Source of the DNA: Octopus bimaculoides
Lineage: Eukaryota
DNA length: 64,000 bases
Direction of reading: 5' to 3'
Assembly (NCBI RefSeq): GCF_001194135.2
Contig: NC_069002.1
Span: 16,448,978 to 16,512,977, forward strand
The notes beneath the pieces are model-generated. The model had not been told where the DNA came from, did not search any database, and saw nothing but the letters and a program-made list of their open reading frames with translations. Of the stretch, positions 50,840-51,494 are shown in pieces. The stretch's first letter is position 1. Every line of letters starts with the position of its first letter. The translations under genes and the position numbers were made by a program.

Positions 50840-50902
50840 GTAAGTGTTGACAAATAAATTTTTTGAGAAATTAAACAAAAAAACATAATTGTACTAATGA
50901 CA

Positions 50903-51494
50903 ATGTGTAAGTGTTGACAATCTGGAATGTGTAAGTGTTGATAGCCTGGAATGTGTAAGTGTTGACAGTCTGGAATGTGTAAGTGTTGACGGTCTGGAAT
51001 GTGTAAGTGTTGATAGCCTGGAATGTGTAAGTGTTGATGGAGGAATGTGTAAGTGTTGACGGTCTGGAATGTGTAAGTGTTGATGGAGGAATGTGTAAGT
51101 GTTGACGGTCTGGAATGTTTAAGTGTTGACGGTCTGGAATGTGTAAGTGTTGATGGAGGAATGTGTAAGTGTTGATGGTCTGGAATGTGTAAGTGTTGAC
51201 GGTCTGGAATGTGTAAGTGTTGACGGTCTGGAATATGTAAGTGTTGACGGTCTGGAATGTGTAAGTGTTGACGGTCTGGAATGTGTAAGTGTTGATGGAG
51301 GAATGTGTAAGTGTTGACTGTCTGGAATGTGTAAGTGTTGACGGTCTGGAATGTGTAAGTGTTGATAGTCTGGAATGTGTAAGTGTTGATGATCTGGAAT
51401 GTGTAAATGTTGATGGTCTGGAATGTGTAAGTGCTGATGGCCAGGAATTATGTGTAAGTGTAGATAATTGTTTCAGCTGGAATGTGTAAGTGTT
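50903..51494 (+). repeat. 24/22-bp minisatellite containing the 5' splice site GTAAGT
   Basis: Unit GTAAGTGTTGACGGTCTGGAATGT with a 22-bp variant GTAAGTGTTGATGGAGGAATGT. About 25 units, 23 with intact GTAAGT. Confidence 0.95.

Follow-up and report, generated by a model that had tools for sequence, protein, structure and literature searches.

Minisatellites in which the first monomer spans an exon-intron boundary have been described in the human genes F7, IFI6 (6-16), CBS, LMNB2 and PDGFA (Borensztajn et al. 2006, PMC1557585). The arrays comprise 5-9 copies of a 37-bp monomer in F7, 25 pseudo-sites in IFI6, 15-20 in CBS, 10-15 in LMNB2 and 16-18 in PDGFA, and they differ in how these sites are used: F7 intervening sequence 7 (IVS7), LMNB2 and PDGFA employ the authentic site alone, whereas IFI6 and CBS leak to the two nearest pseudo-sites (PMC1557585). 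For F7 intron 7, positional selection of the first donor was shown experimentally (PMC1557585). Here we describe a comparable arrangement in a 64,000-nucleotide (nt) stretch of Octopus bimaculoides DNA (contig NC_069002.1, positions 16,448,978 to 16,512,977), hereafter called the window, to which all positions refer. One intron of a delta-1-pyrroline-5-carboxylate synthetase (P5CS) gene consists mostly of a tandem array of copies of its own 5' splice site, and with a probability of roughly 75% we regard this array as a young, locus-specific intronic minisatellite that derives from the exon-intron junction and whose pseudo-donors are silent.

The intron lies on the forward strand at 50840-51540, runs from GT to AG and is delimited by RNA joints that skip 701 nt (50839>51541). 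Tandem Repeats Finder placed the array at 50902-51448, with a period of 24, 23.1 copies and 89% matches, and also called a higher-order period of 142 nt within it. A manual unit-by-unit listing resolved 25 tandem units of 24 or 22 nt between 50900 and 51494, with 20 units measuring 24 nt and four representing a 22-nt variant ending in GATGGA--; the last three units are degenerate. Perfect GTAAGT is present in 23 of the 25 units, the exceptions being unit 10 (TTAAGT) and unit 22 (GTAAAT), and the array ends 46 nt before the acceptor. In all of these respects, the first-pass annotation of this DNA, which had counted about 25 units, 23 of them perfect, ending some 46 nt from the acceptor, proved accurate. 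The motif is strongly concentrated in this intron, with 24 occurrences in 701 nt versus 19 in the remaining 63.3 kb of the window, and every one of the 21 occurrences of the 11-mer GTAAGTGTTGA in the window falls inside it. A search for known RNA families within 47000-52500 found none.

Variation among the units does not single out the donor motif. Across the first 18 positions of interior units 2-23, just four singleton changes occur (positions 6, 8, 12 and 15), two of which fall in GTAAGT, approximately as expected from its 6/18 share of this 18-nt core. Nearly all other variation is found at positions 19-20, where a CpG has decayed to TG or CA, and at position 22. Because half of the core singletons hit GTAAGT and the rest of the variation is centered on the CpG, the motif is not specially preserved, and its uniformity reflects recent amplification and homogenization.

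The array units are copies of the intron's own exon-intron junction. In an ungapped comparison from -8 to +12, the real junction, TGGAAAAT/GTAAGTGTTGAC (the slash marking the splice boundary), and the unit, TGGAATGT GTAAGTGTTGAC, are identical at 18 of 20 positions, comprising 8 exonic and 12 intronic ones, with no difference between +1 and +12. Even with GTAAGT set aside, agreement amounts to 12 of 14 positions, far beyond chance. Differences between the real donor and its copies are confined to -2 and -3 (AAT/ versus TGT/), and a G at -1 is missing from either. The match bears out the earlier view of the array as copies of the host intron's own 5' splice site; the 12 shared nucleotides reported at the time are indeed the identical intronic ones, but this figure understates a homology that extends 8 nt into the exon. 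Since the exonic part of the homology is coding sequence, copying would have proceeded from the junction to the array.

Array and exon are not contiguous, and the first monomer does not span the exon-intron boundary. Instead, the real donor motif is separated from unit 1 by a non-repeat, A/T-rich stretch of 60 nt, which is also found in the related organisms C and D. This spacer contains an in-frame TAA at 50855 as well as AATAAA at 50853 and ATTAAA at 50870. The intron has no poly(A) hexamers besides these two, which are located 14 and 31 nt downstream of the real donor; a motif scan found none inside the array. Scanning for stops in an exon extended into the intron confirmed that read-through meets the TAA at 50855, as had been noted before, followed by 25 more in-frame stops. 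An origin by excision of a spacer between TGAC...TGAC direct repeats was considered and dropped, as it did not restore the 24-nt periodicity.

RNA data from two species revealed use of the exon-adjacent donor only. Three raw RNA-seq runs of organism A (X23, X24 and X65) contained 16 reads across 50839>51541, no other joint from exon 11 and essentially no coverage of 50849-51519. Similarly, the canonical joint was the only one in contigs of five further organism A runs (X4, X9, X11, X48 and X49), with exon k-mer depths of up to about 700-1900 (X11), and in three organism C runs (X51, X56 and X58) at depths of 214, 120 and 13.5. No junction from an array donor was found in the three raw and eleven contig RNA runs, and the unique stretch 50840-50905, which would be part of any extended exon, had zero coverage in the RNA runs examined. 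Nor did the RNA runs of organisms A and C contain retained intron, 3' ends within the intron or any signature of slowed splicing. Intronic RNA was limited to a few array-interior contigs at depths of 2-8, which appear because the multi-copy k-mers of trace pre-mRNA cross the assembler threshold first; in the same line, runs flagged for intron words held only low-depth, array-interior k-mers. We therefore describe the array donors as not detectably used, which is short of never used.

This choice is not explained by the strength of the sites. In the standard U1/5' splice-site register, pairing is practically equal for the real site and the copies, and because positions +1 to +12 are identical, donor choice cannot derive from U1 pairing. 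Masking of the copies by RNA structure was ruled out as well, as the intron folds worse than shuffled sequence: its minimum free energy is -125 kcal/mol, compared with a shuffle mean of -144 kcal/mol (z=+3.66), and it was less stable than 20 out of 20 dinucleotide shuffles. With U1 pairing equal and no masking structure, donor choice would have to rest on position.

The array unit exists only at this locus, as the k-mer depth in DNA matches the number of copies in the window. In the genomic runs X25 and X29 of organism A, the depth of array contigs relative to single-copy flanks approximated the number of copies of the same 31-mers in the window (3.25 versus 3.03, 2.58 versus 3.0, 3.01 versus 2.90, 1.26 versus 1.32, 1.77 versus 1.6 and 1.09 versus 1.0). 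Neutral minisatellites are typically polymorphic in length; in two individuals, the reference copy numbers are consistent with k-mer depth, and unit-level single-nucleotide polymorphisms were seen in X39. The assembled copy number of the donor array is about right. The same agreement rules out a dispersed satellite or a transposon-borne repeat, including the abundant, unrelated satellite that the first-pass annotation had kept in view.

In contrast to the array, a dispersed, hyper-abundant repeat at 51748-51800 in the next intron reaches a DNA k-mer depth in the millions, and further segments of hyper-abundant dispersed repeat lie at 50300-50420 and 51764-52100; the hundreds of RNA reads on such segments run into unrelated sequence and hence come from other copies. 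A (TA)n microsatellite in intron 9 (47632-47664) attracted thousands of RNA reads with unrelated flanks, which represents non-specific mapping and not expression of the locus.

The array is present at the same place in two close relatives, organism C (run X40) and organism D (run X42), at about 5% divergence in the intron flanks. Many flank differences from organism A are common to C and D, which suggests the grouping (A,(C,D)). A protein search for close orthologues returned only fragments of at most 60% identity, and three single-exon matches led to distant loci (L005, L006 and L001), in which the exon is 71-79% identical and the intron is kept at the same codon position. The introns of these three loci measure about 650, 2678 and >1213 nt and contain no tandem repeat and 0-1 GTAAGT each. 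The array, shared with C and D and missing from the distant loci, is thus a lineage-restricted addition to an old intron.

In organism C, the donor copies closest to the exon have lost their GT. Its array sequence was rebuilt from listed differences and comes from one contig of one run, with a depth equal to that of the flanks. Units 1-4 read TATAAGCA, ATAAGT, GGAAGT and GAAAGT, so that a separate change has removed either the G or the T in each. Unit 5 is intact; the last unit, at a distance of 55 nt from the acceptor, reads GTAAAT. Of the seven core changes in units 1-4, four hit the GT (binomial p=0.004), and the chance of all four proximal units being hit is about p=0.0005. Since unit 1 is still intact in organism D, which has flank changes in common with C, the loss is derived in C. 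Such a pattern fits occasional competition from the nearest copies, followed by their weeding out, and is the opposite of what a selected U1 landing pad predicts.

A second junction-derived array lies close by. It occupies the 3' end of intron 9 (47241-48772), preceding exon 10, and its units consist of a branch-like CTAAT, a pyrimidine stretch and YAG/G, the last of which is kept in 21 units. The final unit is the real acceptor, ...CTTCTTAATATTTATCTCTTCAG/GTGAGTCGACGAG, with homology extending about 10 nt into exon 10; this sister array is contiguous with its exon and represents the mirror form of a monomer spanning the boundary. RNA shows use of the joint 47240>48773 alone, in 12 raw reads and at a contig depth of 762, leaving the acceptor copies unused. 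DNA depth of 1-6 times the flank indicates that the sister array, too, is locus-specific. It was seen in organism D; in organism C, no contig was found at a likeness of at least 88%. The two arrays are the only large minisatellites of the window and form mirror-image junction copies, with acceptors before exon 10 and donors after exon 11.

Raw RNA reads of X23 and X24 cover 48180-48768, across the acceptor array and the unique end of the intron, thinly and continuously (1-4x versus 8-17x in exon 10). This coverage is absent in X65 and X11, and coverage of intron 11 is absent in every run, so that intron 9 may be removed more slowly in some samples.

We propose that the donor array started from a duplication of the junction between exon 11 and the intron, which would be the reason that every 24-nt unit carries the donor GTAAGTGTTGA(C/T) together with a remnant of the last 8 exonic bases. 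Slippage and unequal exchange would then have expanded it, leading to the 142-nt block structure, and its units would have diversified mainly through CpG decay. The splicing machinery would take the first, exon-adjacent donor and remove the entire array with the intron, following a positional rule by which the first suitable donor after the exon wins, either via exon definition or via 5'-to-3' 'first come' selection. Leakage to any copy would lead into the TAA at 50855 and yield a truncated, probably unstable message, presumably subject to nonsense-mediated decay. With leak products truncated and probably unstable, the array is likely to be tolerated rather than needed, and thus nearly neutral. 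The copies nearest to the real donor would be the most leak-prone and mildly selected against.

Several observations weigh against this account of a junction-derived, silent minisatellite. The gap between array and exon means that a simple origin, in which the first monomer spans the boundary, is not fully applicable, and the array has persisted through the divergence of three species. From the raw reads, pseudo-donor use is limited to no less than a ceiling of 17% (95%); sensitivity from the deep contigs is roughly 1%, but Logan contigs lose rare variants, and leaks could go unseen if products containing a stop are degraded. Finally, both large minisatellites are junction-derived and surround exons 10-11 of one gene, a coincidence that pure neutrality does not predict; if arrays arose at random intronic positions, we roughly estimate its probability at <1%.

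Table 1. Features of the two junction-derived arrays and adjacent exons (positions in the window; a slash marks the splice boundary)
Feature	Coordinates	Strand	Evidence and remarks
Authentic 5' splice site AAT/GTAAGTGTTGAC	50837..50851	+	Sole donor seen used; joint 50839>51541
Non-repeat A/T-rich spacer	50852..50899	+	Sequence, motif and stop scan; kept with small indels in organisms C and D
Minisatellite, 25 units, consensus GGAATGTGTAAGTGTTGACGGTCT	50900..51494	+	Locus-specific by DNA depth; no RNA junction uses the array
Unique intron tail: probable branch region, pyrimidine tract and acceptor ...CCTATGTTACAG/	51495..51540	+	Sequence; joint ends at 51541
Exon 11 (coding count), carries the real donor, ends in phase 0	50718..50839	+	RNA contigs/reads 50717/8-50839; tblastn aa 596-637
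Next exon, starts VKVHAGPRLTSLLKFGPSPAV...TILTEN (encodes VKVHAGPR...)	51541..51727	+	RNA contigs; tblastn aa 637-698
Sister array, at least 26 units of 33/34 nt, CTTCTTAATGTATCAG/GTGGTGACTGATCTAATC	47785..48772	+	N run 48093-48171 inside, making the unit count a minimum
Exon 10 (...DPDKVIDI), acceptor is the last sister-array unit	48773..48968	+	RNA contigs; tblastn aa 531-595

The first-pass annotation had proposed a function for the donor array, namely that of a dense landing pad for U1 small nuclear ribonucleoprotein that could serve as decoy, enhancer or protection against premature polyadenylation. Such a pad would be under selection, and the many U1 particles bound to it would boost the donor, slow or tune splicing as decoys or suppress poly(A) sites ('telescripting'). 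U1-mediated suppression of poly(A) sites is an established mechanism in other systems, as are decoy 5' splice sites (PMC3826338, PMC3082916), and several features of the locus would suit such a role: 23 perfect GTAAGT in unstructured, accessible RNA, a real donor that is slightly suboptimal for want of a G at -1 (AAT/GT), a canonical AATAAA 14 nt into the intron, and an array kept in three related species. A decoy restraining splicing, however, is at odds with RNA runs of two species in which the intron shows neither retention nor a sign of slowed removal, and nothing speaks for an enhancer effect of the array on the real donor. A guard against premature polyadenylation fares no better, given that intronic 3' ends were not seen, that the poly(A) hexamers precede the array and sit so close to the real donor that the U1 bound there would cover them, and that the intron is only 701 nt long. 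Moreover, array units show no preferential conservation of the GT, which is lost from the four proximal units of organism C, and in distant relatives this intron is spliced although it has no array. Human arrays of comparable structure are described as silent pseudo-sites (PMC1557585). The proposed landing pad gains no support from this, and its decoy, enhancer and poly(A)-guard versions, taken jointly, are unlikely to be correct.

A second functional reading concerns the arrays as a pair, which would form a selected 'splice-factor sink' or buffer of U2AF/U2 and U1 around exons 10-11 and would fix or tune the co-transcriptional definition of these exons, which encode the catalytic-cysteine region. 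It is attractive in that the window's only large minisatellites are junction copies in mirror orientation at adjacent exons, that both are locus-specific, and that the exon-adjacent site alone is used at each. However, organism C splices exons 9-10-11-12 normally although the acceptor array is undetected there at the likeness applied. Low-complexity splice-site regions, GT-rich or pyrimidine-rich, may simply be slippage-prone, and the coincidence stems from a single 64-kb window. The pairing may reflect slippage-prone junction sequence or something more interesting. We consider it distinctly unlikely that selection has shaped both arrays into a device by which many U1 and U2AF/U2 particles are loaded around the two exons and the kinetics or fidelity of exon 10-11 definition is set, and regard the buffer of splice factors as similarly improbable, if not slightly more so. 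Were such a device to exist, junction-derived arrays would be a recurrent functional feature of the genes of this lineage.

At the level of DNA, the donor array might instead be an intronic enhancer made of multimerized TEAD/Scalloped sites. GGAATGT is a typical TEAD-binding motif, tandem copies of which make strong reporters (PMC11447953). It occurs 22 times in the array, in 22 units at 24-bp spacing, compared with 5 occurrences elsewhere in the window when both strands are counted, and TGGAATGTG is found in 17 array units versus 0 places elsewhere in the window. The GGAATG core arises from the only two mismatches between unit and junction (AA to TG), and units 2-4 of organism C have kept GGAATGT while losing the donor GT. 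The case, however, consists in a match to a short motif, the homogeneity of the array is explained by recent amplification, and its conservation ends with the close relatives, which makes an enhancer of this kind a very improbable explanation.

It is extremely unlikely that the array is an assembly artefact, that is a repeat falsely expanded or collapsed: although 14 N runs in the window, one of them within the sister array, indicate an imperfect assembly near repeats, the donor array is free of N, its unit-variant paths were reproduced with 0 differences by independent DNA runs of several individuals, and k-mer depths agree with the assembled copy numbers. The N runs, which are gaps or masking and mostly adjoin microsatellites, lie at 2543-2724, 3359-3533, 6678-7184, 9634-9959, 14614-14979, 16487-17451, 20386-20548, 31032-31863, 48093-48171, 50408-50550, 55222-55388, 56257-56513, 60536-61353 and 62448-63217.

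As for the host gene, database relatives of the protein encoded by the flanking exons are named delta-1-pyrroline-5-carboxylate synthetase, an enzyme of proline synthesis. The homologue P0056, a protein of 802 aa with 60% identity, has the AA_kinase and Aldedh architecture of the bifunctional enzyme, whereas a Pfam search with the isolated 168-aa peptide of exons 10-12 gave no match; the gene is identified as P5CS from source names and the domain architecture of P0056. Mapping with this homologue (tblastn) placed 14 coding exons on the forward strand between ~23.3 kb and 58.2 kb, the eleventh of which ends at 50839. Since an acceptor precedes the ATG of the first coding exon (23316) by 8 nt, a 5'-untranslated exon probably lies upstream. 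The designation 'intron 11' used in the first-pass annotation is hence right by coding-exon count, whereas in the transcript the array intron is probably intron 12.

Two further details concern the neighboring exons. Position 51568 in exon 12 shows an A/G difference that changes the codon between ACA and GCA (Thr/Ala); it is polymorphic in RNA reads of organism A and is G in one out of three organism C RNA contigs. In addition, exon 10 opens with CAG/GTGAGT (48770-48780) and exon 12 with CAG/GTAAAAGT (51538-51550), so that in both cases the acceptor is directly followed by a donor-like motif. This is the layout of a recursive splice site, and no RNA joints supporting recursive splicing at the starts of these two exons were seen.

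The locus amounts to a natural experiment on 5' splice-site choice outside vertebrates, in which 23 accessible donor copies are on offer and only the exon-adjacent site is picked. Together, the two arrays argue that exon-proximal position outweighs U1 pairing strength or proximity across the intron in the site choice of this animal. The loss of GT in a sister species can be taken as an evolutionary read-out, as expected if proximal pseudo-sites leak in the manner of human IFI6 and CBS. In practical terms, the junction can be misplaced by gene predictors and splice-aware aligners. The donor array reveals no new mechanism.

Among known systems, those defined by U1 function resemble the locus least. 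Like the sequences involved in telescripting, the array offers intronic, 5'-splice-site-like sequences with potential for U1 binding and shares its intron with a poly(A) hexamer; telescripting, however, concerns long introns and poly(A) sites downstream (PMC3826338), whereas the present intron is short and has its hexamers upstream of the array. Similarly, in the Rous sarcoma virus negative regulator of splicing, a transcript carries decoy copies of a 5' splice site that are non-productive, but these inhibit splicing (PMC3082916) and raise unspliced RNA, in contrast to an intron that is efficiently removed and leaves an unspliced signal of at most trace level.

The human boundary-derived minisatellites are considerably closer. 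CBS intron 13, LMNB2 and PDGFA intron 4 carry arrays of 10-20 monomers, as summarized in PMC1557585; these monomers are longer (31-100 bp), the genes are vertebrate, and a mirror acceptor array is not mentioned in that summary. IFI6 intron 2, with 25 pseudo-donors after the authentic site (PMC1557585), is similar in number, but differs in that pseudo-site use is undetected here and would meet an in-frame stop. The best match is the 37-bp variable number tandem repeat in F7 intron 7. In both cases, the intronic monomer falls within 10-100 bp and contains the junction including exonic bases, identical copies follow the real donor, the most upstream, exon-adjacent donor alone is used, and no masking structure was found; site selection is positional in F7 and would be so here. 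The differences lie in the 25 units of the present array, each 24 nt long and bearing a strong GTAAGT, and in its 60-nt spacer, compared with the few longer F7 monomers, which carry a weak GTGGGT and adjoin the boundary; in its build, the donor array departs from the F7 type only in not being contiguous with the exon. The kind itself is thus known from several human genes, and what the present locus adds is an invertebrate host, an array set apart from its exon by a spacer, and its pairing with an array of acceptors.

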